Shown piece after piece: positions 3,625 to 28,254 of a stretch of DNA of 64,000 nt. The first letter of the stretch is position 1. Every line of letters begins with the position of its first letter. Below the pieces are notes generated by a model. It searched no databases. It saw only the letters and a list, made by a program, of their open reading frames with translations, and was not told the origin of the DNA. Location: sequence record NC_049851.1; one strand, written 5' to 3'. The position numbers and the translations under genes are program-made.

Positions 3625-3801
3625 TTATACGCGTTCGACGTATTGCCCCGAACGATAGGCGCGCGTTTCCTCTACGCGCCCATAGAATTCCAGATCGAAC
3701 GTTACGATTCCGTTCGCGTCATAGACGAACAGGACAAGGGCCCGCGCCCCGTCGATTTTCAGCGTATCGCCCGCTTGCACGTCCCGCGCTCTTACTTGCA
3801 T
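3625..3801 (-). CDS. hypothetical protein (58 aa, MQVRARDVQAGDTLKIDG...)
   Basis: read by hand; GAGGT RBS; TAA lies inside the 27-bp box. Confidence 0.65.
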   Translation of the reverse strand: MQVRARDVQAGDTLKIDGARALVLFVYDANGIVTFDLEFYGRVEETRAYRSGQYVERV

Positions 3802-3847
3802 GGTGTATCACCTCTAGGTGAATGCGGGGCCGGGCGGCCCCGCATGG

Positions 3848-4492
3848 TTAGATATACTGGCGTTGCTTGTAGCTCAGGGGGCTTGCATACTTCGGGGCCG
3901 GGTCGAGCAGCCAAGTGCGGATTTGATCGGCGCAAGACTTGCGGAACGCAGACCGGAAATTACGCGTGCGCAGCAGCGTAACGCATGCCGGGTATTGATC
4001 GCCCATCGCATCACGCAGAGCCGCCACACGTTCGACCGCGCACCCGATTTCGGCCGCAAGCGCCGCATCGGCCGCCGCTTGCTCTGCTGCCTTGCGCGCG
4101 GCTTCCGCTTCGCGCTGGGCCTGTGCTTCCGCCGCACGCTGGGCTTTCCATGCTTCGTGCGCTGCCTGCACTTCGGGCGTCGCGTCCGGCTTAGAGCCGT
4201 AGCATGGATACGACCAGCCCCGAGTCGTCGCAAAGAGAATGTCTTCGCGACAGCCCTTTTCAGGGTTCCAGACGGCCATATACCAATCGGAATCATCGTA
4301 TCCGTTACGCTCGTAATCGAACAGGCAGAGACCTACATGCGACAGGCTAATGGTTACGTGATTCGATTCCGACATGGCACCGCCATTGTAGGCATACGAG
4401 TGTGCTTCGGCCGCGTCCGGATACCACGGCGTGTAATCGCCTTCCGCGCTGTACACCTTCCCGCCCTTTGCCTCAAGATTGATGATTGCCAT
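3848..4492 (-). CDS. hypothetical phage protein (214 aa)
   Basis: long ORF after promoter 4551; Ala/Glu coiled segment. Confidence 0.8.
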   Translation of the reverse strand: MAIINLEAKGGKVYSAEGDYTPWYPDAAEAHSYAYNGGAMSESNHVTISLSHVGLCLFDYERNGYDDSDWYMAVWNPEKGCREDILFATTRGWSYPCYGSKPDATPEVQAAHEAWKAQRAAEAQAQREAEAARKAAEQAAADAALAAEIGCAVERVAALRDAMGDQYPACVTLLRTRNFRSAFRKSCADQIRTWLLDPAPKYASPLSYKQRQYI

Positions 4493-4583
4493 TTCGTTCC
4501 CCGTCTGGGTTTGTTGAGCATGTACAAATGATAGCGGCCCCGATTGGGGCCGTCAACAATAACCCTTCACTTTATGGGGTTAT

Positions 4584-4787
4584 TCAGTAGGCGAGCAGAT
4601 CGCGCAGCGCATCGCGGTTTTTCGACATATGGTCGATGATCGCGAGCCGTTCGCGTAACCCGATATTGCGGAACGCGGGGCACCCGTCGAGCAGATCGCC
4701 CAGCAAACCGTCCCGATATTCGAGTGCCTTTTCCATGGTGTCGAATTGCTTGCCGCGCGTTACATAGACCCTCTTTTCTTCGATCAC
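4584..4787 (-). CDS. hypothetical protein
   Basis: AGGGGG RBS; stop overlaps the box. Confidence 0.7.
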   Translation of the reverse strand: MIEEKRVYVTRGKQFDTMEKALEYRDGLLGDLLDGCPAFRNIGLRERLAIIDHMSKNRDALRDLLAY

Positions 4788-4803
4788 GATAAATCCCCCT
4801 GTG

Positions 4804-4980
4804 TTATGCGAGCCAGACAGCCAGCGATGCGACGCTGGAAAGCGTGGTACGGGCCGAACGGTGCGCCTTGTGCCACGCAGCGCGAGCCGTGCGCGCCGGG
4901 TGCGCCCAGTTAGCGCGATCCGCGTAGAGTGCGCACGCCAGCTTATAGCGTTCGTCGCGCAATTGTTCGATAGTGTGCAT
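4804..4980 (-). CDS. hypothetical protein (58 aa)
   Basis: read by hand; AAGGA RBS. Confidence 0.5.
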   Translation of the reverse strand: MHTIEQLRDERYKLACALYADRANWAHPARTARAAWHKAHRSARTTLSSVASLAVWLA

Positions 4981-5026
4981 GATGGTGTTTCCTTGTGGCG
5001 GGGCGCACTGCGCCCCCCTGTCTGGT

Positions 5027-5245
5027 TTAGCTGCGATCCATGATGAAGCGCGAGACAGCGCGGGGCGTGTTCAGACGAACCGTTTCGTATTCCGTCCGGA
5101 CAGCCGCGCCGTTATAGACGCGCACGGGGTCTTGCACTTCGATAGAACCGTCCTGCATGGATGCGACCGTGTAGCCGTCACGTTCCAGAATTGCCACGTA
5201 GGGCTTCATTGCGTGGAACAGTTCGATTGCGTTAGCTTGTGGCAT
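5027..5245 (-). CDS. hypothetical protein
   Basis: GGAG RBS after promoter 5305. Confidence 0.7.
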   Translation of the reverse strand: MPQANAIELFHAMKPYVAILERDGYTVASMQDGSIEVQDPVRVYNGAAVRTEYETVRLNTPRAVSRFIMDRS

Positions 5246-5336
5246 GGTGCTGACTCCGTGCGCTGCGTTGAAAGTGATTCCATTATGGGGCGTGTTCGAC
5301 GCCCCGTCAACAGTACCCGACTAAAACGCGGGGTCT

Positions 5337-5501
5337 TTAAACCGCTGCCAGTTCATCCGCCCGGAAGTGACCGCGCACGCCGTAGCGATTTTCGCAGACA
5401 ATGAACTCACCCTCGAAGCCGATAACGCGGATCGTTGCGGCATTGACGCCCGTAAGGATGCGAGCGCGAACAGCTTGATTGAGTGCGAATGCGTGTTTCA
5501 T
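5337..5501 (-). CDS. hypothetical protein
   Basis: start moved to ATG 5501; TAA abuts the box. Confidence 0.65.
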   Translation of the reverse strand: MKHAFALNQAVRARILTGVNAATIRVIGFEGEFIVCENRYGVRGHFRADELAAV

Positions 5502-5576
5502 TTCGTTGTCCTGATTGATTGAGGTATGGGCTAGATTATGACGGGGCTTTCTCACCACGTCAACACCTATTTTCGA

Positions 5577-5855
5577 TTATTCTGCGTCCGTGTCCGCTTG
5601 TTTGACGAGGTAGCCCCAGCCTTTGTAATCCGGATCGGTTTCCGCACGATAGAACCCTTCCGCCGCCAGTGCCGACAGGTGCCCGGCCCATTGGTTCGCG
5701 TTCATCACGTCGCGCACGCTGTCATACGCTGCATGCAGTTCGATTGCGCCGCTCTTATGTTCGCGTGCTTCGATCATGAGTGCCAGCTTTGCGCAGAGTG
5801 CCAGATTGCCCGCGCGCTTTGCGATCTTGAGGCAGTGACGAGCGACTTTCGACAT
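5577..5855 (-). CDS. hypothetical protein
   Basis: start moved to ATG 5855 (CCGGAG RBS). Confidence 0.7.
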   Translation of the reverse strand: MSKVARHCLKIAKRAGNLALCAKLALMIEAREHKSGAIELHAAYDSVRDVMNANQWAGHLSALAAEGFYRAETDPDYKGWGYLVKQADTDAE

Positions 5856-6002
5856 GATGAACTCCGGTTTCTGGTTAGCGGTTCGTCGTGAACCAATGAA
5901 CGTATAGTAACACGCGAAAAGGGGCGTGCGCAATAACCCTATTTTCTGTAGGGTTATTGCGTCACGCCCCCCCTGAAACGGAGTCGTTATTCTGTGCCCG
6001 TC

Positions 6003-6332
6003 TTAGGTAGCGAGCGCGAGCGCGAGCCGTGCACGTGTGCGCCAGTACGTAAGCGCGGGGCCTAGCTCGTCGGGCTGGCGCGGGCTCAGCACATACTGAT
6101 GCTGCTTATGCTCGTCGTGCAGCATCGCCCGCGCTGTATCGTCCCAAAGCTGGGAAAGTGCCTCTAGGCGTTCCACCTGCCGTATTGCATACTCGTAATC
6201 GCGCCGACGCTGGAGAGCCCTACGACGAGCCGCTACGTGTTTCCGGTCGAGTGCCGGGGCGTGCCCCGCCCCGATAGTACGGTCGAATATCGCGCCCAGT
6301 TCGGCCCGGCTCTTACCCGGATAATCAGCCAT
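6003..6332 (-). CDS. hypothetical protein
   Basis: overlaps the stop of the previous gene. Confidence 0.65.
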   Translation of the reverse strand: MADYPGKSRAELGAIFDRTIGAGHAPALDRKHVAARRRALQRRRDYEYAIRQVERLEALSQLWDDTARAMLHDEHKQHQYVLSPRQPDELGPALTYWRTRARLALALAT

Positions 6333-6618
6333 TTTCCGCCCCTTTCTCTACGTAATCGAGCCCTACAACGCAGCACGTGCGCGCGTCAACGATGCTATCG
6401 TCTTCGGCAAACGTGAATGCCGGGTGATCCGTATGCGGGTTGATCGTAACACCCGTAACCGTGTTGATGACTTCCCCGCCCCGGAATTTGTTGCCGCTGC
6501 GCTTGATGACGCGACGGCCGATAACTGCCGTGTAGTCGTCCGGATCGTCGCCCCATTCCGGGGTAATCTGGATTGCGCTGTACTTGCGCAGCAGCGCGCG
6601 TGTTTTCTTGTAGGCCAT
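6325..6618 (-). CDS. hypothetical phage protein
   Basis: AAGGG RBS; operon packing. Confidence 0.7.
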   Translation of the reverse strand: MAYKKTRALLRKYSAIQITPEWGDDPDDYTAVIGRRVIKRSGNKFRGGEVINTVTGVTINPHTDHPAFTFAEDDSIVDARTCCVVGLDYVEKGAENG

Positions 6619-6627
6619 GCGCCGCCC

Positions 6628-7044
6628 TTACGCGTAGACGATGCGCCCGAGCGCCGCCGCCTGCATGATGACATCGGCCGTATCCGCATCGATGTGCGCC
6701 GTATCGCCTTCACGAATCGCGTGCAGGATCGCCGCCGCATAGTGCGGGGCCGCTTGTGCGTGGTCTGCCTTGTCGGTCATGTCCCCGAGCAACACCCGGC
6801 GCATGCCTTCCGCGATTTCGGCCGTCCCGATTTCGCACGTGCTCAGGGGTGTATCGCCGTCCCCGAACTCGTCCACGCGCAGGCGATCCGGATACGTGAT
6901 TTCGTGCTCGTCGGGTTCGGTGCGCTTCGTCACGTCGAATTCGCCCCAGTTCGGGGAGTAGCCCGTAATCGCCATATCGATGACTTCACGGCAGAATTGC
7001 GCGCTCACGTCGAGCGTAAGCGGAATCAAGTGGCTTTTGGTCAT
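6628..7044 (-). CDS. acidic hypothetical protein
   Basis: start moved to ATG 7044 (CCGGAG RBS). Confidence 0.75.
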   Translation of the reverse strand: MTKSHLIPLTLDVSAQFCREVIDMAITGYSPNWGEFDVTKRTEPDEHEITYPDRLRVDEFGDGDTPLSTCEIGTAEIAEGMRRVLLGDMTDKADHAQAAPHYAAAILHAIREGDTAHIDADTADVIMQAAALGRIVYA

Positions 7045-7078
7045 GATGTACTCCGGTTCGTTGCGTGGTATGTGGGTG

Positions 7079-7330
7079 TTACTGCGTGTCGCTGTCGTCG
7101 TGTTCCGTGCCGTCGTCGCCCGCGCTGTCGTCGTCTGCAAACTGCCCGAGCACGTAATCATTCGCGAGCCCGATAATCCGGTCTTCCGCGTCTTCCGCAT
7201 CCATGCCGTGCAGTTCGTCGGCCGTGAACAGGATAACCGCGTAGCCCCGCGCCTTCAGACCGCGCAGCATCGCGATTTCTTCGGGCGTCAGGTCGTTTTG
7301 TGCTGCGTTCGTGTTCGTTGCGTCGGTCAT
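7079..7330 (-). CDS. acidic hypothetical protein
   Basis: start moved to ATG 7330 (ACGGAG RBS). Confidence 0.7.
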   Translation of the reverse strand: MTDATNTNAAQNDLTPEEIAMLRGLKARGYAVILFTADELHGMDAEDAEDRIIGLANDYVLGQFADDDSAGDDGTEHDDSDTQ

Positions 7331-7382
7331 GATGTACTCCGTTATGTAATCGATGGGGGCCGCGCTAGGCCCCTTGGTTTGG

Positions 7383-7580
7383 TTACTGTGCCGCTTTCTT
7401 CGCCTTGTCTGCGGCCCGTGCACGTCGGCAATGTTCGCATTGCTCGCCCGGCTGTGCCGCATCAAAGAACGGGCCCGACACAAGGCCGTTAAGCGTGTCG
7501 CGCTTTTGATAGCCGCGCGCATAGCAAAGCGTCATCGTTGCGCCATTCTTGAATTTAGCTACCACGTGAAGCTTTGCCAT
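7383..7580 (-). CDS. hypothetical protein with a CxxC pair
   Basis: AGGGG RBS after promoter 7638. Confidence 0.65.
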   Translation of the reverse strand: MAKLHVVAKFKNGATMTLCYARGYQKRDTLNGLVSGPFFDAAQPGEQCEHCRRARAADKAKKAAQ

Positions 7581-7666
7581 TTTGCGCCCCTGCGTTTCGT
7601 TGATCGATGGCTCTATTCTGGGGCCCGCGTTTCGGGCTGTCAACAATACCCGACTAAAACGCGGGG

Positions 7667-8368
7667 TTATTTGGTCGGATGCCGGTCGATACAGGCTTGC
7701 GCTGCCTCGTCTACCGTGTCGAACAGGCCCGAATCCTCAACCCAGAATCGCGCGCTGTAACGATAGTTGTCGCCGATAGGCTGAATCGCGAATCCCAGTT
7801 CACTGCACTGCGTAATCAGGCTCTGTGTATGCTGTTCGGCATCGCGCTTGCGTTGCACGTCGAAATGCGCGCGCATCAGTTCCCGAACGAGCCCGGTTCG
7901 CGCGCTGTCCATCGTCTGAAACGGGCCCGCGATGTTACGCTGTGCCGTTACGTCGAACACGTAGAAAGGCGCGTCGCGGCCGTCGCCCTGTAGCGTGCCA
8001 TCGTCGGCCGTGCCGTCGATTACCAGACAGTTACCGTCGGCCGTGTAGCCGGTGCGCGCTTCGTCCAGTTCGCGAGCCTTTGCGCTCGCGCGCTTAACGG
8101 CCGCCCATGCGGTCGGGGCGGGGGCTGCTGCATCTTCCGTCTTCGCGACCGGTTCGGCATCCACGCGCGGCTGATGGTAGCGGCTGACAGCTTCCGCAAC
8201 CTGTGCGGCGTCGATTTCCGACGCGGCGGACACCACGTGACCCTGTTCGATCAATTCGGCCATATAGCAGCAGACAGCCATTTCGCTATCGCCTTGCGGA
8301 TGCGCGGTGCGGCCGATGTAGACGATCCAGTTACCGTGCATGTTCTTGCGTGCGCGAATCAGGGACAT
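7667..8368 (-). CDS. multi-module hypothetical protein (233 aa)
   Basis: GGAG RBS after promoter 8427; TAA inside the box. Confidence 0.8.
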   Translation of the reverse strand: MSLIRARKNMHGNWIVYIGRTAHPQGDSEMAVCCYMAELIEQGHVVSAASEIDAAQVAEAVSRYHQPRVDAEPVAKTEDAAAPAPTAWAAVKRASAKARELDEARTGYTADGNCLVIDGTADDGTLQGDGRDAPFYVFDVTAQRNIAGPFQTMDSARTGLVRELMRAHFDVQRKRDAEQHTQSLITQCSELGFAIQPIGDNYRYSARFWVEDSGLFDTVDEAAQACIDRHPTK

Positions 8369-8458
8369 GATGCTAACTCCGTGTGTTGTGTGTCGATGTG
8401 TGTATTCTGGGGCCTATAGTCGGCCCCGTCAACTATTCCCGAGTAAATCACTCAGGTA

Positions 8459-8674
8459 TCACATAGTGCGTTGCCGTGTGTAGAGCACGCGGTTAATGTC
8501 GTCGCGGATGCACACACGATAGGGGCCGTCGCGTTCCACTATGTAGGCCCGCCACTTGTGAATTACGATCGTTCGCGCGCATCCATAGGTGATCATCTTG
8601 TGTTCACCTTCGTCCGCGATCATTTGCGCGTCCTCTTCCGCCAGCTTGGCGGGGCCGTCGTCGTTCGTGCTCAC
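8459..8674 (-). CDS. hypothetical protein
   Basis: GTG start with GGGGG RBS; stop overlaps the box. Confidence 0.5.
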   Translation of the reverse strand: MSTNDDGPAKLAEEDAQMIADEGEHKMITYGCARTIVIHKWRAYIVERDGPYRVCIRDDINRVLYTRQRTM

Positions 8675-8685
8675 GGTCGCCCCCG

Positions 8686-9123
8686 CTAGATGAGTGTCTG
8701 AGGATCGACGCCATGCGCCGCGCCTATGCGCTCGCGAGCGGCCCGGCTCGCCTCGTATTCCACGCGACAGAACTCGCTGAACTCGCGACCGACGAGGCGC
8801 GCGGCTATCGCCTCGTCCTGCCGTTCCTCGTATGCAGCGCGTTCGGGGCTTGCCGCATATTCTGCCTGAGCGGCGGCCCGTGCTTCTGTCGCGTGTTCGG
8901 CCTGCACGCGGTTCAATTCGATCCGTGCGCGTTCCGTGTTCAGCGTCAGGCACGACAGCGCGTAGAACAGGCTTTCCCCTGTCTCCGTCACGTCAACGCG
9001 CCACGTGCTCAGGTAGCCCGTGCGCCCGCAACAATCGCACTTGGTGACTGTTCCGGTCGGGCCAATGATTCGAAACCCCGTTTCCGCGATGGTGCGTGCG
9101 CGTTCTGCCTTTTCGTCGTCCAT
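8686..9123 (-). CDS. hypothetical protein with a putative Zn site (CDCCGR...SC)
   Basis: AAGGGG RBS; Cys cluster. Confidence 0.75.
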   Translation of the reverse strand: MDDEKAERARTIAETGFRIIGPTGTVTKCDCCGRTGYLSTWRVDVTETGESLFYALSCLTLNTERARIELNRVQAEHATEARAAAQAEYAASPERAAYEERQDEAIAARLVGREFSEFCRVEYEASRAARERIGAAHGVDPQTLI

Positions 9124-9209
9124 AGCAATTCCCCTTTCCTGTGATTGGTGAGTGTGTCAATCTCAGTATAGGATGCACGCGCGAAAAGCAAAGGCGCACG
9201 TGATCCCGG

Positions 9210-9473
9210 CTAACCCTTATTCGTCATAACATGGAAATACAGGATTCCCCCAATGTCGGCACGCGGTGCGCGCGACTCGTAACGGCGTGTGAAGTGATTG
9301 TAATAAGTGCCTGAGACCATACGCGACTGATTGCTGTACATGCGAGCCAGACCCGCGTCAACTAGGGCACGCGCCGCCTGTGCCTGACGTGCGCCCACAA
9401 CCGGCACGCTATCGGCGTCGCCCCGCGCGTCTAACAGGGCCTGCATTGTCTTCGTGATCTTAACCATGCTCAA
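9210..9473 (-). CDS. hypothetical protein
   Basis: AAGGA RBS; overlaps the previous stop. Confidence 0.65.
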   Translation of the reverse strand: MSMVKITKTMQALLDARGDADSVPVVGARQAQAARALVDAGLARMYSNQSRMVSGTYYNHFTRRYESRAPRADIGGILYFHVMTNKG

Positions 9474-9697
9474 TCCTTGTCCTGTGGCGCAAACGGGCTG
9501 ATTACTCGCCCCTCTTTTCCTGCCCGATACCCGCGTTTCAACCCTTGCACAAATCCCGAAACACAGGCACGAATGACGTGCATTCCAACATACACGGCGT
9601 TAGCACCTTCGCCCGCGATGCCCGCGCCGTTTGCGAGCATGCAGACGACGACAATTAGGGCGGCCCGACGCGCCCACTTACCCGCGCCCGGCTTCAC
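9470..9697 (-). CDS. putative membrane protein
   Basis: hydrophobic segment AALIVVVCMLANGAGIA. Confidence 0.55.
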   Translation of the reverse strand: MKPGAGKWARRAALIVVVCMLANGAGIAGEGANAVYVGMHVIRACVSGFVQGLKRGYRAGKEGRVISPFAPQDKD

Positions 9698-9873: not shown

Positions 9874-10435
9874 CGTCCCTACCCCTTACCCTTCGTTGAC
9901 GGTAACGCTATCCTAATCCAGACAATCCGCCACGTCAACAATAACCCCTCGTTTCAGTCGGGTTTATTTCTGCACAGAAACCCCACACAATCCGGGGTTA
10001 TTCCCGTGCCCGGCTAACCACTCGCAGCACGCTACTTTCTTCATTATAAACACGCGCTACAGCCCCTTAAACGGGCCGCCTGTAGTTTCCCCTACCCATC
10101 AGTCAATCACGCGCACCGGGCCGCCTGAGCGCGTTCTCTGCGTCTATGCGTTCGTCAGGAATGCAGCGCAATGCGGGGCCCGGGCCCGGGCCATTGATCG
10201 GGAATCCTGACGATCCGGGCTCGCGCGATTAGATGATTCGCACTACCGACGAATGCGGTACTTGACGCGCTGCCCCGTCTGTGCCGTGTGCGATGCCCCG
10301 CCCGGGCCCCGCCCCATCCGGTTTTCGTTAGCACAACTAATCGCGCTCGTCAACTATACCCCCTCCCCCCATCCGGTTTTTAGCACCCCCTCCCCCTATC
10401 TGTGGTAGTAAGGTATCCTACCAAAACCCCGTTTT

Positions 10436-11184: not shown

Positions 11185-11201
11185 ATCCGTTCCCCCGTGC
11201 T

Positions 11202-11387: not shown

Positions 11388-11470
11388 GGTCTTGTCCAAT
11401 GGGTTAGTTGATGTGGTGATTATGGGGGCTGGCTGCGCCCCCGTCAACTATACCCGTTTAGAGTGTGGGG

Positions 11471-12475
11471 TTATTCTGCTTTGTTCGCGACGAACGCGAG
11501 GGCCTGTACTTCTGCGGCCTGCACGCGTTTATACTCGGCTTCGCTGACAGCCCGGCCCCCGATCCGGATACGCGCCGGAAACTGGTTGAAAATCTCACCC
11601 CGAACACTCGTATTGATGATGATACGCTGGTTGATTACCACGCGTTGACCTACGGGCGTGCGGCCCGTCAACAGGAATTCGTAACCCGTGATCGATTGGA
11701 AAGCCGGGTCTTTCAGGTCGCCCGCCTTCGACATTACCTTGTGCTCTACGCTGTCACGCACGGCGCGGGCGTAGTCTGCGGCACGGGCGCGAAGGCGTTC
11801 GGCGTTGATCGAACCATCGCCATTCGTGCATGCGCGCAGTGTCGAGGCGTAGAATTTCGACCATGCCTTATCGCGGGCGATGCCAGCCAGCAGGGGCCCG
11901 AATTTTGCGACTGCCTGAGCGTGTCGCGCGCTCACGTAGTCTTCGAATTGTGCGACGAGCGCCGGGCCCTGTGCATCGAGTGCGGCGCGCACCACTTCCG
12001 ACAGAACGGGGGCGGACATGGTGCGTTCCACGTGTGCGCGCTGTGAGGTTGCGGCCCGCGTCTCGCGCTTCGCGATCCGGGCTTTTGCGGCCTTCAACGC
12101 GGCTTCAACCTCAATCCATTCCGCAAACAGGTGCACGGCCGTGCGTGCGATAGCGTGTCGGCCAGCGAGTGCGACGGCCGCCCGGTGCATGCGCTTCACA
12201 CTCGGCAGGTTCGACGCATCATAATACAGGTCTTGCAATTCGTCGGGGCGCGGGAACGCGAGCGCCAGATAGGGGGCGCGCACCGCCCATTCCATCAGGT
12301 TTTCATAGACGGTCGTGAGTTCCGCGCGCATTTCCTTGTAATCGACGGCGCGCATGCTATCGGTGCCGCAAAGCTGGGCGATACGCGAATCGAACGCGTT
12401 GATAGCACGTGCATTGTGCGGACGATCCGACAGCAGAATGCGGGCGAGTGCGGCGCGCGTGTTTTGCAGTTCCAT
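11471..12475 (-). CDS. hypothetical phage protein (334 aa)
   Basis: start moved to ATG 12475 (AAGGGG RBS); TAA inside the box. Confidence 0.85.
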   Translation of the reverse strand: MELQNTRAALARILLSDRPHNARAINAFDSRIAQLCGTDSMRAVDYKEMRAELTTVYENLMEWAVRAPYLALAFPRPDELQDLYYDASNLPSVKRMHRAAVALAGRHAIARTAVHLFAEWIEVEAALKAAKARIAKRETRAATSQRAHVERTMSAPVLSEVVRAALDAQGPALVAQFEDYVSARHAQAVAKFGPLLAGIARDKAWSKFYASTLRACTNGDGSINAERLRARAADYARAVRDSVEHKVMSKAGDLKDPAFQSITGYEFLLTGRTPVGQRVVINQRIIINTSVRGEIFNQFPARIRIGGRAVSEAEYKRVQAAEVQALAFVANKAE

Positions 12476-12707
12476 GGTCTTTCCCCTTCCGGGTTCGTTG
12501 AGCGTGGACAAATAGTAACAGCCCCTTAGAGGGGCCGTCAACAATAACCGACTAAATTAGTCGGTCTTTATCCTGTGCTAACCGTCTTCTGCACGATAGC
12601 CCCGATCCAGTCGGCCGGAATCACGCTGACGGTGCGTGTCACGTCCCCCGCTTCGTCTTCCGATCCGGTCTGTACCGTATGCGTCAGGGGCCGGGGCCCC
12701 CATCCCC

Positions 12708-13217: not shown

Positions 13218-13364
13218 TTTCAAATCTCCGTTTGGTGAGAGTGTGCTACGTGGTTAAGTGGGTGTTGCGTGATTCGTTAAGACAGATTGTAGGGGACTAA
13301 ATTTTGTACGTCAACTAATCCCCTTCAATTTGTGGGGTCTTTTTCGCAGACCCCGGCGCGTTCG

Positions 13365-13622: not shown

Positions 13623-13738
13623 TCCCTAGTTGTGTTGCGTTAATCGATGAAGCAGATTGTAGGGCAATCATTTCCGCCCGTCAACAATACCCCTACAATT
13701 TGCGGGGTCTTTACGGCAGACCCCGGGGCCGGTGCGCG

Positions 13739-14335: not shown

Positions 14336-14446
14336 GATGCTAACTCCGTTTGGTTTGTGCTGCGTTGTGTGAATCGATGTATGAATTATGCCCGCGTCTT
14401 TTTGGCCCGTCAACAGTACCCGAGTATTTTAGTCGGGTATTGTGAC

Positions 14447-15006: not shown

Positions 15007-15104
15007 GGTGCGCCCCTCTAGGCTTGGTGTTGCGTTGAAAGTGAGACTATTGTATGCGGGCCCGTGTAGGCCCGTCAACAATAAACCCCTTGCGTGTAGG
15101 GTTA

Positions 15105-15647
15105 TTACAGAACCAGTGTTCCGTTATTGATGAGGTAAGACCCGATTGCGGCAACCCGGCCGCGCGCTTGCGCGTCCTTTCGCAGTTCGTGCAGTTCGTC
15201 GGGTTCCATGCTCGTGAGAATGCGCGCCGCCATGGTTTCGGCCGCGTGCACTTCGCGATCTTCGGATTCTGCGACAGCGCGCAGCATGTCGGCCACTTCT
15301 ACCATGTGCCACTTGGCGCGCAGCACGCCCGCGATATCCTGTTCCGTAATTTCGGGCAGATTAACGAGGTCGAGCGGATCGGCCGTGCATGAGGCAAAAA
15401 GCACGCCGTCGGCCGTGTGCAGGGTGACGCTGCGCAGACTCTGCCCCTTGAGCACGCGCCCGAGCGTGTCGGGCAGGGACGTAACGCAGACCGCATAGAG
15501 CGCGGCGTCCGGGCTCGCGACAATGACGATAGATGAATTCTTGTCCATCGCCTTTTTGAAACCCGTTTGCATCAGGTCAACGCATGCGCCTTCGCCAATC
15601 GAGCGGCCCGCATTGTGAATTTTGATTGCGTGCATGATAGTTCCCAT
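15105..15647 (-). CDS. hypothetical protein
   Basis: after promoter 15694; TAA abuts the box. Confidence 0.75.
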   Translation of the reverse strand: MGTIMHAIKIHNAGRSIGEGACVDLMQTGFKKAMDKNSSIVIVASPDAALYAVCVTSLPDTLGRVLKGQSLRSVTLHTADGVLFASCTADPLDLVNLPEITEQDIAGVLRAKWHMVEVADMLRAVAESEDREVHAAETMAARILTSMEPDELHELRKDAQARGRVAAIGSYLINNGTLVL

Positions 15648-15733
15648 GTGAGTGATGAATCGATGAGTGAATTATGCGCCCTTGTCTTCAGCCCGTCAAC
15701 AATACCTGAGTAAAGCAGTCGGGTATTGGTGCC

Positions 15734-16567: not shown

Positions 16568-16653
16568 CGTTGCACCTGTTTGGTTAGTCGATGGACAAAT
16601 AATAACGGGCCCCGAAAGGCCCGTCAACAATACCCGACTAAATCGCGGGGTCT

Positions 16654-17343
16654 TTACAGCACGTCCTTAAATTCGTCGTTCAGTCGCTTACGCTGGGCGC
16701 GCAGTTTCTCGATATGGTTACGCGTTTCTTCGCGCCAGATACCGGGGGCATTGCGCACGATCCAAAGGTCGCGCACACGCTGTTCCGTTTCTTCGATATC
16801 GGATTCGAGCCGTCGGGCCGCTTGCCATTTCGCGTCGTATTCCCGTTCGTCTTCCGCGTAGACGCACGCATGCGAATCGGCGTCCGCTGCGGCAGCGCGG
16901 TCACTGTCATAGACAGTCGTGAACACGACGTGTCCATCGTTGTCTGACGTGGTGTAACCCGCGAGATAACGGCCGTGCGTCAGGCGCACAAAGAACGGAC
17001 GCGCTACCTCCGTTCCGTCTTCGTCCGTGAACCATCCTTTGTGGCTGACGTAAGTGCGTCCCGAGCGCGGGTTTTCCGTTTCGTCCAGATAGCACACGCG
17101 GCCGGGCAGCGCGTCATCGTCAAATGTCGAATAGATATCGATCTTGCGGCCGTATTCCGTGTTGTAGCCCGCGCGCAGGCCCGAGTCGTTCGACAGGAAA
17201 TTTCCGAACCGGGCCGAACGCCAATCGATGAGTCGGCCGCCCTTCCCAGCGTTCACCTTGGCATTGTGGGATTCCACGTAGCCGCGAAGGTACGCGAGCC
17301 GCTTCCGTGCGCCAATGCGAAGGTTGCGATAGGTAGTGTTCAT
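16654..17343 (-). CDS. hypothetical phage protein (229 aa)
   Basis: after promoter 17411; TAA abuts the box. Confidence 0.8.
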   Translation of the reverse strand: MNTTYRNLRIGARKRLAYLRGYVESHNAKVNAGKGGRLIDWRSARFGNFLSNDSGLRAGYNTEYGRKIDIYSTFDDDALPGRVCYLDETENPRSGRTYVSHKGWFTDEDGTEVARPFFVRLTHGRYLAGYTTSDNDGHVVFTTVYDSDRAAAADADSHACVYAEDEREYDAKWQAARRLESDIEETEQRVRDLWIVRNAPGIWREETRNHIEKLRAQRKRLNDEFKDVL

Positions 17344-17477
17344 AATCGAATCCGTTTAGTTAATCCCGCGTCGCGCGGTATGAAAAGGATTGTACGCGTC
17401 TTATTCCCTGCGTCAACAATAACCCCGCGCAATGAGGGGTTATTGTTGAAGCACTCCGTAGAGTGCGGGCCGCGTCG

Positions 17478-18144: not shown

Positions 18145-18239
18145 GATGTGCCCCGTTAGGCGTTGTCGATGTGTGAAGTATGCCCGGGCCCGCGAGGCGC
18201 GTCAACAGTACCTGAGTATTTTAGTCGGGTATTGCTGCC

Positions 18240-19872: not shown

Positions 19873-19966
19873 GATGGTTCCCTTAGAGAAGGTTTGTTAA
19901 GTAAGTGTGTGTATCATACCGGGTTTAATTTCGTCCGTCAATTAAACCCGTACTAAAATTAGGCTT

Positions 19967-20107
19967 TTATGCTGCCTGCATGCCGCGCACTTGCCGGATT
20001 GCATCGCGCACTTGCTCACGTGCGAACGGGAACCGGCGCAGGTTGCGCAGACCGTAATTGATGCCGATAAATTCGATTGCCGTTTCGATATCGCGGAAGG
20101 TCTTCAT
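19967..20107 (-). CDS. hypothetical protein (46 aa)
   Basis: GGAG RBS; TAA inside the box. Confidence 0.6.
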   Translation of the reverse strand: MKTFRDIETAIEFIGINYGLRNLRRFPFAREQVRDAIRQVRGMQAA

Positions 20108-20564: not shown

Positions 20565-20658
20565 GGTTGCCTCTAGGCGGTTAGTGCTGCGTTGAAAGTG
20601 ATGCTATTGTATGCGGCCCGTTCTAGAGCCGTCAACAATAACCCACTAATTCGAGGGG

Positions 20659-20940
20659 TTATTCTTCGACCCACAAGCTAGGATCGCACGACGTTTCAAT
20701 CCGGAAGTGCGACGCATCGCGATAACGGCGCACAAACAGGCGGCCGTGCTGCGCGTAGGTCATGCCTTCAGTCAGCCATGAAACATGGTGCAAATCGCCC
20801 GGCATCGGGGATTTGAGCGGCCCTGCGTGCGTGACACGAACGGGCGTGAATTCGTCAGGGAACAGCCGCGCATCGTAGCGCGTGCGCCGATAGTAGAGGG
20901 TCTTACCATCCACGTAATCCTGAAAGCATGCGGGTTTCAT
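20659..20940 (-). CDS. hypothetical protein
   Basis: AAGGGG RBS; TAA inside the box. Confidence 0.65.
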   Translation of the reverse strand: MKPACFQDYVDGKTLYYRRTRYDARLFPDEFTPVRVTHAGPLKSPMPGDLHHVSWLTEGMTYAQHGRLFVRRYRDASHFRIETSCDPSLWVEE

Positions 20941-20950
20941 GGTCGGCCCC

Positions 20951-21100: not shown

Positions 21101-21189
21101 TTCGTTCCCCTTCGGGTTCGTTGAATCGATGGACAAATAGTAACAGCCCCTTAGAGGGGCCGTCAACAATAACCACAAATAATTTGTGG

Positions 21190-21438
21190 TTATTCGGTGC
21201 GGAACAGGTGCGCGGGCGCGTCGTGCTCGTACCAGTAACGGGCATCGCGTAGCGTGTCATGACTGCCGACCGCGCGGCCGTCGATGCTGACGAGCCATCG
21301 ATTACGCGTAAGCGTCACCATACGCGCATGGGGCGGCCCGTCCGGGCTGTAGTTATCGCGTACCTGTACCAGTGCGCCGGACGGCGTGCAGGCCGCATAC
21401 AGCCCGGCCTCTACACGTTTCAGGGGCGGCCGGTTCAT
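21190..21438 (-). CDS. hypothetical protein
   Basis: ATGA overlap; TAA inside the box. Confidence 0.6.
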   Translation of the reverse strand: MNRPPLKRVEAGLYAACTPSGALVQVRDNYSPDGPPHARMVTLTRNRWLVSIDGRAVGSHDTLRDARYWYEHDAPAHLFRTE

Positions 21439-22635: not shown

Positions 22636-22732
22636 GGTCAGCCCCTTTAGGCCGGTCTTTACTGCGTTGAAAGTGATTCTATTCTATGGGGCCTGCTGCC
22701 CCGTGTCAACAATAACCCCAGACTTTACTGGG

Positions 22733-23089
22733 TTATTCGTTGTCCATCATCCCGAGCCGGGCCCGGATCATTGACAGGCGTTCCGATACGGGCACGGCAC
22801 GGCCGCCGCCCAGACGAACCCATCCCGCGCCAGACGGGCACGCGTCAATGTCATGCACCCCGGAATAAGCGGCGCAAATGTCGGCCGCACTGTTAGCCTG
22901 TAGCAGCGTATAACCGGCCGTGCGCGCGTGCTGCGCAGCATCCCGGCCTGACTCCCACACGCGAGCATGCGCCCGGCCCGTCTTCTGTTCACCCTCCCCT
23001 ACAAACTGCGCGGGGCCCTGCGCGACGACACGCAGACGATAGCGCGTCGTGCCTTCGTGTTTCTGACGCATCACATACACTTGTTGCAT
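22733..23089 (-). CDS. hypothetical protein
   Basis: after promoter 23148; TAA inside the box. Confidence 0.7.
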   Translation of the reverse strand: MQQVYVMRQKHEGTTRYRLRVVAQGPAQFVGEGEQKTGRAHARVWESGRDAAQHARTAGYTLLQANSAADICAAYSGVHDIDACPSGAGWVRLGGGRAVPVSERLSMIRARLGMMDNE

Positions 23090-23186
23090 ACCCTTAAAAC
23101 TCCCGTTCGTGAATCGATGAGTGCAGTATGTGCGCGTGTGCCCGTACCGTCAACAGTACCAGACTAATTAACTCAGGTATTAGGGC

Positions 23187-23639: not shown

Positions 23640-23760
23640 GGTGTTTACTCTGCTGTTTGGTTAAGGTGTTACCAGTATAGATGGGAGAATTCCCTGCGTC
23701 AAGAATAACCCCGCATAGTGTAGGGATTATTCTTGACGGGGCCCGAAAGGGCCCGGGCCG

Positions 23761-24150
23761 TTATTCGGCGTCGTCTTCCTCGTCGGCCGTTTCGGTCGCT
23801 TGTTCCACGTCGGGCACTTCCGACGTGCGCCCGAGCGATTCAGCCAGTTCGCGGAACCATACGGCGTCGCACCCGTCCATATCCGTATATTCGGCCGCCA
23901 GTTCCGCAAACGTGCCTTCACGCCCAGCGTAAGGCGACGTGTAGAACGATTCCAGCGCGCCATCGCGCAAGATCGCCGCTTGAAAATCGGCGTTCGTCAG
24001 GAATACGAGCCCGCTATGCGTGTTGAACGCCGCTTGTACCGCTTCGGTGCTGAAGTCTTCGGGCAGGCCGCCATCGTTCCATGCTTGTAGGATCGCGATG
24101 AGTTCATCACGTTCGCGACGGCCCATGTTTGCCATGTTGGTAAGCGACAT
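23761..24150 (-). CDS. acidic hypothetical protein
   Basis: AAGGA RBS after promoter 24207. Confidence 0.75.
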   Translation of the reverse strand: MSLTNMANMGRRERDELIAILQAWNDGGLPEDFSTEAVQAAFNTHSGLVFLTNADFQAAILRDGALESFYTSPYAGREGTFAELAAEYTDMDGCDAVWFRELAESLGRTSEVPDVEQATETADEEDDAE

Positions 24151-24237
24151 TCGTTTGATTCCTTGTTCGTTCAGAGAGATTACATTGTGCCGGGTAGTGT
24201 TCTCTCTGTCAACAATACCCGAGTGCGGCGCGGGGTC

Positions 24238-24612
24238 TTACTTCGTCAACGCGCCCGACAGGCTTTTGACGCATGCGCCGTAAGCGGGCTCGCGTGCATC
24301 GTCGGGGCTCGCGCCCTTGAATGCGGCGCTGCTGTAAATCAGGGCCGCATTACCCTTCATCAGATCGACAAGCGGACGCGCGACGCCCGCAAACGTGCGT
24401 TCGATATCGGCCTGAGTTTCCGCGAGCGTCACCCCGCTATCACGTGCGCGAACCGACAAAACCGCAACGTCAGCAACGCCGTTACACGTCTGCGAAATGT
24501 TCGCCTTTTCTTCCGCCGTGAGCGGCGCAGCCTGCGCCGGAACCCCAGCCCCGCACGATGCGGCAGTCGCGAGCGCAGCGAACGCGACTGCGGAAACGGT
24601 ACGTTTGAACAT
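24238..24612 (-). CDS. putative exported protein
   Basis: signal-peptide-like MFKRTVSAVAFAALATAASCGAGVPAQA; two further Cys. Confidence 0.7.
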   Translation of the reverse strand: MFKRTVSAVAFAALATAASCGAGVPAQAAPLTAEEKANISQTCNGVADVAVLSVRARDSGVTLAETQADIERTFAGVARPLVDLMKGNAALIYSSAAFKGASPDDAREPAYGACVKSLSGALTK

Positions 24613-24693
24613 GCTTGATTCTCCGGTTATGCGTCTGTTGAAAGTGAGTCTATTGTATGCGGGCCCGTGTAGGCCCGTCAACAATAAACCCCT

Positions 24694-25050
24694 TTACCCT
24701 AGGGTCTTCGCGATCCGACGCGCCCAGCGTCGAGCATAGCCCGCGCGTCGGCATCCGTGCGGATGCGTCGGCCCCGTGCCCTGCCCCAGACAATACAGAT
24801 AGGCGCGAAGGGCTGCATTGATGCTTTCCGGGGTTGCGCCCAGTTCACGCGCAAGATTTTTGCGCCTCAGTCTGAGCAACGCCATAAGGCTGTCTGCCTC
24901 ATACGTGTAACGTTCGTGTTTCAGGCCCGCATGCGCCATGATGCACGAATCGATTGAGACACGGGCGCGCGGTTGCATAGCCGCCGCCCAGCCCGGAACC
25001 GGGGCCTTTCGTTGTCGCCAATATTCGGCGTGTTCGCCTGTCACGATCAT
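24694..25050 (-). CDS. basic hypothetical protein
   Basis: ATGA overlap; runs into the box. Confidence 0.6.
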   Translation of the reverse strand: MIVTGEHAEYWRQRKAPVPGWAAAMQPRARVSIDSCIMAHAGLKHERYTYEADSLMALLRLRRKNLARELGATPESINAALRAYLYCLGQGTGPTHPHGCRRAGYARRWARRIAKTLG

Positions 25051-25343: not shown

Positions 25344-25430
25344 TTCGTTCCCCTTCCGGGTTCGTTGAGCGTGAAACCAGTATAGACGGGCGCGCGGCGC
25401 ACGTCAACAATAACCCCGTGCTCTATGGGG

Positions 25431-25853
25431 TTAAATCAAAATCATTTCCGTGTAACCCAGCGTCCGGGCAATTGCCAGCAGCGCATCATTACCCGCGCCC
25501 TGTTCGCACGACTCAAACGCGATTGGTGCGCCCGCGTCGTCGCGTATATCGATCCCTGCCGACACTAGGGCCCGGTCGAACGCGAGCCCGAACGATTCAC
25601 GCCCCGCGCTCGTCTTCGCCACGCCGTAACCTGACGTGGTAGCGGCCCCGCAACGAACCCACAGCGACGCATAGAGGTTCGTTGCGGACGTGCTGCGCGA
25701 TGCCCAGTAACGCAATTCGCACACGTGTTCAAGCTTACCCGTTACCGGGTTAAGGGCAACGAGGGAAACGGTGCGGATGCGTTCCTTCGTCCCGTCGTGC
25801 TGCTGCGCGTTATCCTGTTCACCCTTAAACGTTACTTGCATACGTTGCCTCAT
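25431..25853 (-). CDS. hypothetical phage protein
   Basis: ATGA overlap; TAA inside the box. Confidence 0.7.
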   Translation of the reverse strand: MRQRMQVTFKGEQDNAQQHDGTKERIRTVSLVALNPVTGKLEHVCELRYWASRSTSATNLYASLWVRCGAATTSGYGVAKTSAGRESFGLAFDRALVSAGIDIRDDAGAPIAFESCEQGAGNDALLAIARTLGYTEMILI

Positions 25854-26353
25854 TCCGCCGCATTCTTGCCAAGGTGTTCCGCGAGCGGTTCACCATTTTT
25901 CATCAGCGTAACCGACTCCCCGGCCGCGCGCCCCGTCCCCTCGTCGGACGTGATGACCCATGCATCATAGGCTGCATACGCGGCCGTTCGGTCGTCGCCT
26001 TCGTACACGGTGCCGACGTTACCGACGATGACGAGATAGCCCGTGTTCGTCGGGTTCGCGATGCCTTCAATGACTTCGATAGCTTGCTCGCGCGTGCTGT
26101 AGCGGTGGAACTCGCCCAGCGTTTCCACGTTGCCGGTTTCCCCGTCGATCTTGCGCACCGAAAATTTCGTGATCCCCGACGGGTTCGTTTCCTGCGAAAC
26201 GAAATAGTACGAGCCGAAAATCAGCCAGCCCCGGGCCGGAAGTCGGGTCTTGAAAAACTTCATTGCATCAGCATCGAACCAGTGCCCGTTAGGATTCTTT
26301 TCGGCGTAGTGCGCGCGAATCGTGGACATGGTGACGGTCTTAGCGTTTTTCAT
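25850..26353 (-). CDS. two-module hypothetical protein (GHWFD-x3-MKFF motif)
   Basis: AAGGGG RBS after promoter 26413. Confidence 0.75.
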   Translation of the reverse strand: MKNAKTVTMSTIRAHYAEKNPNGHWFDADAMKFFKTRLPARGWLIFGSYYFVSQETNPSGITKFSVRKIDGETGNVETLGEFHRYSTREQAIEVIEGIANPTNTGYLVIVGNVGTVYEGDDRTAAYAAYDAWVITSDEGTGRAAGESVTLMKNGEPLAEHLGKNAAE

Positions 26354-26451
26354 TTGGTGCCCCTTTAGGCGTCGTGATTGGATGACTGAATTATGCGCGG
26401 GCCCGTCTGGCGTGTCAACAATAACCCCAAAATTTTTATGGTTATTCAGGC

Positions 26452-26476
26452 AAAGAAAAAGCCCCGGCTGGGGCTT
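26452..26476 (-). terminator. intrinsic terminator
   Basis: AGCCCC-AGCC-GGGGCT followed by TTTTCTTT on the minus strand. Confidence 0.7.
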
Positions 26477-26627
26477 AGAGGATGCGGGCCGCCTGTATGG
26501 CCGCCGCTCGCGTTCGGGCCGTCCCGTGAGACTGGCCCCGCACGTCAAAAATTTCCCACAAGCGACGGTCGCCTACACGCTGCACGTAGCCGCGTAGCGT
26601 CCCCCGCTCGTCGTAAACCGGGGTCAT
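26475..26627 (-). CDS. hypothetical protein (50 aa)
   Basis: ATGA overlap; ends at the terminator. Confidence 0.55.
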   Translation of the reverse strand: MTPVYDERGTLRGYVQRVGDRRLWEIFDVRGQSHGTARTRAAAIQAARIL

Positions 26628-27301
26628 GATCCGCGCGTGTCGAGCACTTCCGCCGCTTCCGTAATCGTAAGGTTCGGCACGCCGTCCACCATCCACGTTT
26701 CGACCGTCTGCCCGGCAATCCGGCGCAGGTAGACGGAAACCGGGACATTACGCAACCGGCCATGTCGCGCGGCCCCGAACGCTGCGAGTTCGTCCGATTT
26801 TGCGGCAAACCGAGCGACAATGGATTCTGCGAAGTCAACCAGTTCACGGGCTGCCGCAAGCGGGATAGCCTTGTGCGGTTGCGGGGCCGCGACTCGCGCA
26901 ACCTCGTTTTCTGCGTCGCGTTGCTGGGTGAACGTGCCCCGTCCGTCAACGTACCAGTTACACACGATCCAATCACGGGCCCGCGTATGGATCGCGCAGC
27001 ACGTGACAGGCACGCCCCCGATATCTGCGGTTTCCGCATGATCGTCTTTCGACGTGCGGGCGATCTCGCGCGCTTCGTTCGCGAGTTTCGACAGTTCGGC
27101 CGAAATTTGATCGATGGTCATTACTTGTCCGTTCAACATGGCTTCGAATTCCATTTCATTTTCGAGAAAATACAGTTCGGGGGTGCCCGCGATAAGATGC
27201 CGGGCCGCCCGCGCTTGCTCGGCACGCCATTCCGGATTATCGGGGAATGCGCGCCGGGCCCGGGCTAGTTCGATCCGCAAGTGTAGCGCGAGCGGTGACA
27301 T
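26624..27301 (-). CDS. hypothetical protein (225 aa)
   Basis: TAATG overlap. Confidence 0.75.
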   Translation of the reverse strand: MSPLALHLRIELARARRAFPDNPEWRAEQARAARHLIAGTPELYFLENEMEFEAMLNGQVMTIDQISAELSKLANEAREIARTSKDDHAETADIGGVPVTCCAIHTRARDWIVCNWYVDGRGTFTQQRDAENEVARVAAPQPHKAIPLAAARELVDFAESIVARFAAKSDELAAFGAARHGRLRNVPVSVYLRRIAGQTVETWMVDGVPNLTITEAAEVLDTRGS

Positions 27302-27786
27302 TATGCGACGAGCCGCTTAACGGGTTCAACGCTGCGCGGGTGATAAACCCAGCGCAGTTCAGCCAGCAAGGGCGCGTATTCTTCCGGGGTTGCCAGCTTC
27401 AAATCGCGGCCCAGACTGCGCGACACTTCCCCATGCTGCCCCGTGTGCATGTAGGACATCACGTTACCCGGGTTGCAGTCTTTCGCGCTGTTACAGAAAA
27501 ACGCGATTACGTAACCCTCGCGAAACTTGCGGAACACGACACGCAACGCGGGCGGCGCAAACTTCGCGGCCCCGTAGCGCTGCGCGTCTTCGGACAGGGC
27601 GCGCACGCCCGAGGGGTCATGTGCATCCCGCGAGCCGTGAACGTCGACCAGATCGCCGCTGCGCTTATCGAATTGAAACGTGATCGGAACGCGGGGGCCA
27701 AACCCGGGCCATTTGCGCGCGAACGCTTCAACGTCTGCGGTCGTGCACTGCACGGTAAAGAATGCCCCATTATCATATGCTCGCAT
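27301..27786 (-). CDS. two-module hypothetical protein (VVFRKF...YMHTGQH motif)
   Basis: GAGG RBS after promoter 27851. Confidence 0.75.
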   Translation of the reverse strand: MRAYDNGAFFTVQCTTADVEAFARKWPGFGPRVPITFQFDKRSGDLVDVHGSRDAHDPSGVRALSEDAQRYGAAKFAPPALRVVFRKFREGYVIAFFCNSAKDCNPGNVMSYMHTGQHGEVSRSLGRDLKLATPEEYAPLLAELRWVYHPRSVEPVKRLVA

Positions 27787-27882
27787 GGTTGCCTCTAGGC
27801 GGTTGTGCTGCTGTTGAAAGTGAAACCAGTATAGGACGGGGCCGCCGCCCCGTCAACAATACCAGACTACCGCGAGGGGTCT

Positions 27883-28254
27883 TTATTCCGTGCCCCGCAA
27901 GCGACGTACAATTTCCGCGTGCGACAGGCCCGACATAAGACGGTCAATTTCCGCTTGCTCGTCCGCCTGCCGTCGCTCGTCTTCTGCTACCTGCCTAGCG
28001 AGTTCTGCGCGCCACTCTTTCAGGGCCCGCGCGCCCTTTTCCGTGCTGCGCGGATCAACCGACAGATAGAGCGTGACTTCGCGCCCCTCCCGGTCAACGA
28101 AAACGGGCGTGCCGCTATTTTTCACCACTACCGTGAAATGCGACTGAACCAGACGGTTTACGGTGTCGGCATCGATAGCCCCGCCAAACGATCCGCCCAC
28201 AACCTTCCGCGTGTTGTCGCTGTAGAGGCGCGTGTGATAGCTGATATTGCGCAT
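27883..28254 (-). CDS. hypothetical protein
   Basis: after promoter 28311; TAA abuts the box. Confidence 0.75.
   Translation of the reverse strand: MRNISYHTRLYSDNTRKVVGGSFGGAIDADTVNRLVQSHFTVVVKNSGTPVFVDREGREVTLYLSVDPRSTEKGARALKEWRAELARQVAEDERRQADEQAEIDRLMSGLSHAEIVRRLRGTE

Follow-up and report, generated by a model that had tools for sequence, protein, structure and literature searches.

The closest described counterpart of the repeated element considered here is the Promoter early Stem-Loop (PeSL) of T4-like phages, a composite terminator/promoter made up of a stem-loop, an A/T-rich stretch, sigma70-like -35 and -10 hexamers, a Shine-Dalgarno sequence and an ATG (Arbiol et al. 2010, PMC2839356; Comeau et al. 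2014, PMC4122927). PeSL are repeated between the ORFan genes of hyperplastic regions, undergo insertions, deletions and replacements via recombination at varying points within the element and, in phage nt-1, have a stem of the form A3-4 G3-loop-C3 T3-4 (PMC2839356, PMC4122927). The stretch at issue, here called the window, corresponds to positions 1-64000 of MK552141, with identical numbering. This record is the 262,653-bp genome of Burkholderia phage BcepSauron, a member of the genus Sarumanvirus; in its left part a palindrome of 27 nucleotides (nt), termed the box, recurs next to promoter-like sequences between small genes. Also pertinent are phage 'morons' and the SPO1 host-takeover module, where small genes of unknown function are transcribed as separate units, each having its own strong host-type promoter and terminator. 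They are clustered at a genome end, like the Sauron cassettes, and are expressed early, as is probable for Sauron as well. To our knowledge, however, the promoters in those cases have not been described as one repeated module of about 100 bp with a conserved palindrome, nor has exchange of cassettes at the repeats been proposed.

BcepSauron is a jumbo phage of Burkholderia cenocepacia, with 59% G+C, related to Ralstonia phage RSL1, with which it has its structural genes in common. Its left 29 kb carries 61 annotated small genes, nearly all leftward. Where the two genomes were compared, identity to the sister phage, BcepSaruman, is about 96-98%. The original prediction had likened gene ends within the box to those of integron cassettes in attC. 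The reading favored here, with a probability of roughly 0.7, is that box and promoter together form PeSL-like regulatory units of an early region of the host-takeover type, that the cassettes between them are swapped by general homologous recombination and that the array is not an integron.

A palindrome held next to the -35 hexamer

AATAACCC occurs 19 times in the window, where 0.98 occurrences are expected, and the palindrome AATAACCC-N11-GGGTTATT, with up to three mismatches allowed, 16 times, with an expectation of 0.04. When all 262,653 bp are scanned with a position-weight matrix, 32 modules of box plus promoter are recovered, all within 1986-29156 and none elsewhere; 30 are on the - strand and the two on the + strand are at 28999 and 29156. 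With 61 genes in these 27 kb there is on average one promoter per 1.9 genes, and the modules account for roughly 10% of the region. The same confinement is evident in BcepSaruman, where TATTGTTGAC is present 19 times, on a single strand and always in 1.9-27.5 kb. Outside these phages, the box is found in the genomes of 185,579 bacterial species as scattered single sites in unrelated taxa, at about the frequency of a rough chance estimate and without enrichment, and in IMG/VR the strict box pattern has no matches and a loose one yields single-site contigs only. In 1-32000, no Rfam family or tRNA scored above threshold.

Read on the coding (-) strand, the box is directly followed by (G)TTGAC, a spacer of 16-18 nt (mostly 17) and a TATAAT-like hexamer, and the whole is a composite of about 100 bp consisting of stem-loop, near-consensus sigma70 promoter and leader with ribosome-binding site. 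The near invariance of GTTGAC beside the box, pointed out in the original prediction, is borne out (GTTGAC in 28 of the 32 modules, NTTGAC in 31). Promoter-like sites number 23, with 8.1 expected. Between Sauron and Saruman none of 180 positions in the -35 hexamers and two of 203 in the -10 region have changed, with third codon positions diverging by 6.3%; as both elements are nearly unchanged, the modules are presumably working promoters of the sigma70 type. Divergence is 3.3% in the arms of the box and 9.7% in its loop (Fisher p = 0.0003) and, judged from these figures, the arms are under constraint and the loop is free of it. No paralogues were found among the 61 flanked proteins, the best-scoring pair reaching E = 0.001 over 45 residues, and it is therefore the regulatory modules, not duplicated genes, that are the repeated units.

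The box belongs with the promoter rather than with gene ends. Modules without any upstream gene (1986, 28999, 29156) have it, and so do those where a classic terminator, e.g. GGGGCCTAGGCCCCTTTTCTTT, separates stop codon from box. Its abutment to the -35 hexamer is in constant register, with one of the 32 boxes (5932-5958) having GCGCAC instead of a -35; there the box forms the tip of a stem (5900-5975, - strand; -48 kcal/mol, z = -7.3) predicted to be a very strong terminator. The box might act as an operator, as a hairpin that attenuates transcription or as a promoter element of the upstream type.

The composition of the box, with A/T-rich blocks near -61, -50 and -38.5 split by CCC and GGG in a genome of 59% G+C, together with a loop that stays A/T-rich while its sequence drifts, is what an UP-like or bent-DNA element would have, in which three A/T blocks one helical turn apart aid the alpha subunits of RNA polymerase and palindromy is incidental. 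That explanation is doubtful, since the symmetry goes beyond composition (68% paired over 11 column pairs, as against 36-51% with slid partner columns) and the G+C block at -44 to -42 falls where the proximal UP subsite of the Escherichia coli consensus is centred.

Symmetry at a fixed distance from the promoter is also what an operator would provide, i.e. a dimeric phage or host regulator binding AATANCC-N13-GGNTATT beside the -35 and switching some 32 early promoters on or off together, for instance to silence the early genes. This is a genuine if tentative possibility, and one compatible with the PeSL-like interpretation. The register is constant in 32 of 32 modules, arm positions A2, C6, C7, G22, T24 and A25 are at least 90% conserved, the arms diverge at one third of the loop rate and the hairpin that the box can form as RNA is weak; further, a box is present despite a separate terminator just upstream and is therefore not needed as terminator. 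Nevertheless, a DNA-binding domain was detected in none of the 61 early proteins, the box is not enriched in bacterial genomes, and from one box subfamily to another the CCC and GGG blocks are displaced symmetrically by 1 bp and some inner positions covary, which fits pairing better than base-specific reading. The same arm form in aquatic phage contigs of 38-42% G+C, of which the one compared has no protein similarity to BcepSauron, also counts against a dedicated regulator.

Exchange of cassettes and its probable machinery

Parts of modules recur with different partners. The terminator and box of module 15700 match those of module 18206, module 12542 combines a core promoter identical to that of 21167 with a leader matching that of 25408, and 15034-15091 is near-identical to 24637-24694. 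The modules are therefore mosaics.

Six cassette-scale events distinguish Sauron from Saruman in the first 29 kb, and the next 25 kb aligns as one piece. In three of the six, affecting gp041 (on both sides), Saruman gp036 and gp069, a junction lies within or next to a module. Sauron alone has gp041, and in its place Saruman has a hybrid module, whose terminator, box and 5' part of the spacer resemble the 15700 type (the box being identical to 14415-14441) and whose 3' spacer part, -10 and leader match module 15079; with this two-parent makeup, the crossover is placed inside the promoter spacer. Saruman gp036, which also ends with the box TAA, is replaced in Sauron by a remnant of 124 bp, and as the core promoter at 12513..12569 is common to the two phages and the boxes are different, the junction of the replacement lies at the boundary of box and -35. 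The two gp069 genes are unrelated, with divergence beginning just beside the bidirectional box 28972-28998. The Saruman-specific genes are absent from the whole Sauron genome and the Sauron-specific genes from the first 36 kb of Saruman, the part compared for gene absence. In public sequencing runs containing the same or close phages (DNA contigs), the Saruman-type junction is seen again, and a sludge relative there has intragenic mosaic patches.

Three smaller changes lead to the same conclusion. The Saruman box at 27053 is now identical to the 16628-type box, a conversion between modules; the loops of boxes 5932-5958 and 28318-28344 are reverse-complemented with respect to Saruman 5856-5882 and 27514-27540, with the arms kept, small inversions such as occur at hairpins; and in Saruman a double change lengthens the spacer stem at 23703. 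Loop flips, box conversion and stem change are what would be expected if palindromes recombine or undergo template switching. A more adventurous proposal is that the modules offer more than passive homology, and that the palindrome and/or the G+C-rich hairpin of the spacer is extruded, as hairpin or cruciform, and targeted by a phage protein, leading to a recombinase-independent 'cassette capture' in which foreign ORFs (open reading frames) arrive flush against a ready stop and promoter, with flipped loops and stop-in-arm as its footprints. It is improbable.

That the window is without a recombinase, as first remarked, is correct, and the same is true of the entire genome as far as tyrosine, serine and Y1-HUH enzymes and RecT are concerned: PF00589 (tyrosine recombinase), PF00239 and PF01797 (serine recombinase and Y1-HUH searches) and RecT had no match in it, with controls positive. 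Encoded at about 142.35-143.85 kb is a RecA-like protein of 498 amino acids (RecA domain, Pfam E = 4e-13), likely to be the phage's strand-exchange protein. Separately, a GIY-YIG homing endonuclease with several helix-turn-helix domains is encoded just outside the array, at 30204-31175 (+), where it adjoins an A/T-tract region (29708-30099).

Recombination at or next to the box had been proposed to insert ORFs. Cassette content is indeed changed at the gp041 and Saruman gp036 junctions, and that part of the proposal stands; a dedicated site-specific system does not. With junctions at differing points of a module of some 100 bp, and elsewhere at ribosome-binding sites or in genes, the pattern fits homology-driven exchange and not cleavage at a fixed site. 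An integron-like arrangement, in which mobile cassettes have the box at their 3' end, where a dedicated recombinase cuts and joins the DNA, could draw on the stop codon in the distal arm in 15 cassettes, on the box having travelled with the upstream gene in one replacement and on the box loops flipped between the sister phages. It is highly improbable, however, as no cassette lacks a promoter of its own, promoters without an upstream gene have the box as well, junctions are at various module points instead of one site, the arms do not fit the attC core GTTRRRY and the genome-wide searches just described found no enzyme for it.

From the PeSL-like interpretation, the following course of events may be envisaged. 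Host RNA polymerase would start at each module, as the TTGAC-17-TATAAT consensus and the near-total conservation of the hexamers suggest. A G+C-rich hairpin, between stop and box or, when the stop is in the box, in the -35/-10 spacer, would stop or weaken transcription arriving from upstream, and the box hairpin, of the form A/T-CCC...GGG-A/T, may add to termination. Because the same module flanks unrelated ORFan genes, RecA-like machinery could cross over between modules, and such a crossover would delete, duplicate or replace whole self-expressed cassettes.

Gene ends, spacer hairpins and the flanked genes

The 15 stop codons originally listed as lying in or against the distal half-site are all ends of annotated coding sequences and each overlaps the distal arm by 1-5 nt. 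The further statement that the stop is often the TAA of the box is accurate for seven (columns 3-5); six others straddle the box edge (tAA, tGA or TGa), and the remaining two are TAA at columns 1-3 of a variant box. In two of the 15 cases of arm overlap the box departs from consensus to make the TAA. The element was also thought to provide incoming DNA with its stop and the following gene with its promoter; the promoter role is sustained and the stop role is only half true, as the six straddling stops take their first one or two bases from the gene side. Two more stops, at 24694 and 28332, are in the box loop, so that 17 of the 28 modules with an adjacent upstream gene hold its stop. Stops in the distal arm would come about because cassettes are packed flush on the next module, whose A-rich outer arm, AATAA, provides all or part of an ochre or opal codon.

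Whether compact packing by itself, i.e. a tight genome and A/T-rich stop codons meeting an A/T-rich arm, is enough has to be considered. Intergenic distances equal the module length and the stops are in all three frames relative to the box, as it would have them. Yet the distances from stop to box are bimodal, with 17 stops between -16 and -1, 11 at +22 or beyond and not one in the interval from 0 to +21, and this exceeds what loose packing would produce. Moreover, stop-in-box is tightly tied to a hairpin in the spacer, and the same geometry is found in the aquatic phage contigs. Packing as the sole cause is unlikely.

A strong G+C hairpin in the spacer (-9 kcal/mol or stronger) is present in 15 of the 17 stop-in-box modules and in one of the 15 others (Fisher 7e-6, Mann-Whitney 0.0006), the single exception among the latter being module 12542, whose remnant reading frame also ends at the box. 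Since the hairpin sequences vary by module, it is the structure that recurs and not the sequence. Such a hairpin can form only in read-through RNA from upstream and is thus a putative substitute for the missing stand-alone terminator. A simple terminator scan of 1500-21000 flags only four of the spacer hairpins. An excess of T after the spacer hairpin in stop-in-box modules was looked for and none was found. The modules are predicted to have both promoter and terminator activity. The fixing of a stem-loop to the -35, the hairpin within a promoter spacer and the loop flips between sister phages may be new.

Several observations weigh against the PeSL-like interpretation. Half of the six events lack a module junction; theirs lie within a gene or at a ribosome-binding site or start codon. 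The events are also few. As RNA, the box forms a weak to moderate hairpin (-0.2 to -16 kcal/mol across modules), with a median of -7.7 kcal/mol against -5.4 for random 31-mers; its U-rich tail, UUAUUGUU, is present, the stem is weak and a simple terminator scan passes two boxes only. A T-rich tract follows only about one third of the spacer hairpins and is not enriched over other modules. Further, fixed abutment to the -35 and conserved arms could mean protein binding instead of, or besides, a hairpin.

C-termini truncated or re-routed at the box, another expectation of the original prediction, are not in evidence, gp043 and gp060 stopping at roughly the same point as the relative or family of each. 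The alignment of gp043 with the one distant relative found continues to the last gp043 residue; that relative has no box after it and goes on for only seven more residues, and one PHROG profile reaches about 40 positions past the gp043 match; the end of gp060 is within four positions of that of its family profile. As the other stop-in-box proteins have no PHROG family and gp036 has no relative at all, either in IMG/VR or among 5.8 billion proteins, the comparison of C-termini is thin.

The flanked genes are otherwise largely without known family. Just one of the 61 proteins has a Pfam family, a domain of unknown function, and PHROG families, all of unknown function, were found for six of the 37 scanned singly; gp027 has a match only to the N-terminus of a BcepB1A protein. 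The idea that stop-in-box genes are more often ORFans was tried and dropped (PHROG matches for 2 of 17, 2 of 11 and 2 of 9). No Pfam match at E <= 0.01 was obtained for the products named in GenBank as replication factor (15761-16567), transposase TC5 (16654-17343), tail tape measure (21435-21929), glycosyltransferase (21943-22635) and Ser/Thr kinase (23761-24150), and these five names look unreliable.

Features of the array are collected in Table 1. Two further stretches within it deserve mention. At 18240-18349 (-) a strong promoter without a box, TTGACA-17-TACAAT with TG, comes right after the gp046 stop and is followed about 75 nt on by the terminator GGGGCCTAGGCCCCTTTTCTTT with no ORF between them; this is a candidate small RNA gene, and has no Rfam match. 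At 9874-10637 a stretch of 765 bp is without annotated genes and has G-rich runs, a degenerate module near 10360, the orphan box 9976-10002 and a 49-bp direct repeat, 10436-10484 and 10510-10558, whose copies are 98% identical.

Table 1. Modules, boxes and a box-poor promoter of the BcepSauron array
Feature	Coordinates	Strand	Details
Module 1	1957..2013	-	Box 1987-2013, GTTGAC 1981-1986, -10; no upstream same-strand gene
Module	3573..3629	-	gp015 stop 3625-3627 is box TAA; G+C hairpin in spacer
Module	4528..4584	-	gp017 TGA shares 1 nt with box; spacer hairpin GGCCCCAATCGGGGCC
Module	5282..5338	-	gp020 tAA shares 2 nt with box; spacer hairpin
Promoter TTGACG-17-CATAAT with truncated box (AATAA...)	5535..5581	-	gp021 TAA 13 nt upstream of GTTGAC
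Box without -35 (GCGCAC)	5902..5958	-	Box 5932-5958 is tip of 22-bp stem, then TTTT; loop inverted in Saruman
Module	7615..7671	-	gp027 stop is box TAA
Module	8404..8460	-	gp028 tGA shares 2 nt with box; spacer hairpin
Module	9910..10002	-	Box 9940-9966; orphan second box 9976-10002 precedes
Module	11419..11475	-	gp036 stop is box TAA; spacer hairpin
Module	12513..12569	-	Remnant frame ends with TAA at box edge; box unlike Saruman's, core promoter common
Module	13286..13342	-	Stop 22 nt upstream of box
Module	13656..13712	-	Stop 26 nt upstream of box
Module	14385..14441	-	Classic terminator 14454-14469 precedes
Module	15050..15106	-	gp041 tAA shares 2 nt with box; one partner of gp041 indel junction
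Module	15671..15727	-	Terminator GGGGCCTAGGCCCCTTTTCTTT precedes; other partner of gp041 indel junction
Module	16599..16655	-	gp043 tAA shares 2 nt with box; spacer hairpin and TTATTATTTGT, terminator-like
Module	17388..17444	-	Stop 33 nt upstream of box
Module	18177..18233	-	Terminator precedes; terminator and box 91% identical to 15694-15761
Module (ATTGAC)	19913..19969	-	gp050 TAA is box columns 1-3
Module	20607..20663	-	gp052 stop is box TAA
Module	21138..21194	-	gp054 stop is box TAA; core promoter 100% identical to 12505-12549
Module	22681..22737	-	gp057 stop is box TAA
Module	23125..23181	-	Terminator precedes
Module (CTTGAC)	23674..23730	-	Saruman spacer stem one pair longer, double change
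Module	24184..24240	-	gp060 TAA is box columns 1-3
Module	24653..24709	-	gp061 TAA in box loop; 98% identical to 15034-15091 over 58 bp
Module	25379..25435	-	gp063 stop is TAA in box
Module	26390..26446	-	Terminator-like hairpin precedes
Module	27828..27884	-	gp067 tAA shares 2 nt with box; Saruman box identical to 16629-16655
Module	28288..28344	-	gp068 TAA in box loop; loop inverted in Saruman
Rightward module	28972..29028	+	Box also faces weaker leftward promoter; gp069 replacement starts beside it
Second rightward module (ATTGAC)	29129..29185	+	

Comparison with known systems

RSL1 has no comparable dense array, only a few modules of hairpin plus TTGACA and a repeated leader. That leader, CCCATCGAAA(C/A)GGAG-N5-7-ATG, precedes more than a dozen RSL1 genes, e.g. 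at 6909, 16895, 44013, 207816, 214176 and 227769, a few of its copies standing behind a hairpin with a T tract that continues into TTGACA, and its CATCGA motif recurs in BcepSauron leaders. An exact search of metagenomes for box plus GTTGAC gave one contig, Ga0075473_10070361, with 42% G+C and three boxes (215-241, 920-946, 1130-1156), where one gene ends with the TAA of AATAACCC and another in the loop. Contigs of 84 and 163 kb encode relatives of one of its proteins; they have PhoH, 2OG-Fe(II) oxygenases, Cpn10, S21 and MazG-like genes and are presumably from aquatic T4-like myoviruses, the link to T4-like content being through that protein family only. On the 163-kb contig (L260; boxes 9443-9469 and 11354-11380) and another of 13 kb (L261), ATTAACCC-N11-GGGTTATG and AATACCCC-N11-GGGTTATT are found before TTTACT or TTTACA, 17 nt and TATAAT or TATACT, and one gene on these two contigs ends with the arm TAA. 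With stop-in-arm found there as well, it is a recurrent property of such elements and not the mark of an integron.

The likeness to integrons is that of an array of small unrelated genes on the same strand, with an imperfect palindrome at the end of each that overlaps the stop codon or lies directly against it. The geometry proposed from it, that of attC, is not upheld, with each cassette having its own sigma70-type promoter, boxes without an upstream gene or with an intervening terminator, and no integrase. In contrast to integrons, no IntI or other site-specific recombinase of the kinds searched for was found in the whole Sauron genome, its cassettes are not promoterless and there is no attI/Pc platform. 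That the box is not a canonical attC was correctly recognized at the outset: the arms AATAAC and GTTATT, or the adjacent hexamer GTTGAC, put T or C where purines are required. The attC core sites, RYYYAAC ... GTTRRRY with crossover in GTT, are thus unlike the Sauron arms, and Sauron junctions, in the spacer or at the box/-35 boundary, are not fixed.

At the level of sequence, the Sauron modules share every feature of PeSL. A stem-loop with A/T-rich arm and G/C triplet is just upstream of a sigma70-like -35 and -10, a leader, a Shine-Dalgarno sequence and an ATG; tens of copies are between small ORFan genes in a hyperplastic early region; junctions of indels and replacements between sister phages are inside the elements at varying points; and the phage has its own homologous recombination machinery. 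PeSL are further characterized by measured promoter and terminator activity and by mini-circles that arise between adjacent elements, whereas the comparison made here is one of sequence. There are also differences. BcepSauron is an RSL1-related Burkholderia jumbo phage and not T4-like, and its stem-loop directly abuts the -35 with no A/T spacer. In over half of the cases the upstream stop is in the 5' arm, as also in the aquatic contigs, a feature not found described in PMC2839356 or PMC4122927, and each module carries another hairpin, rich in G+C, which is located before the box or in the -35/-10 spacer. The presence of a spacer hairpin in nearly all cases where the upstream stop is in the box is an unusual layout, possibly a very compact design of terminator and promoter. 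From a practical perspective, the modules offer a ready map of about 32 predicted early transcription units for a phage of Burkholderia cenocepacia, and gp041 a natural example of the gain or loss of a whole self-expressed gene via crossover inside a promoter. If the PeSL-like interpretation is true, modular shuffling of the PeSL type, so far described only in T4-like phages, extends to an unrelated lineage of jumbo phages.

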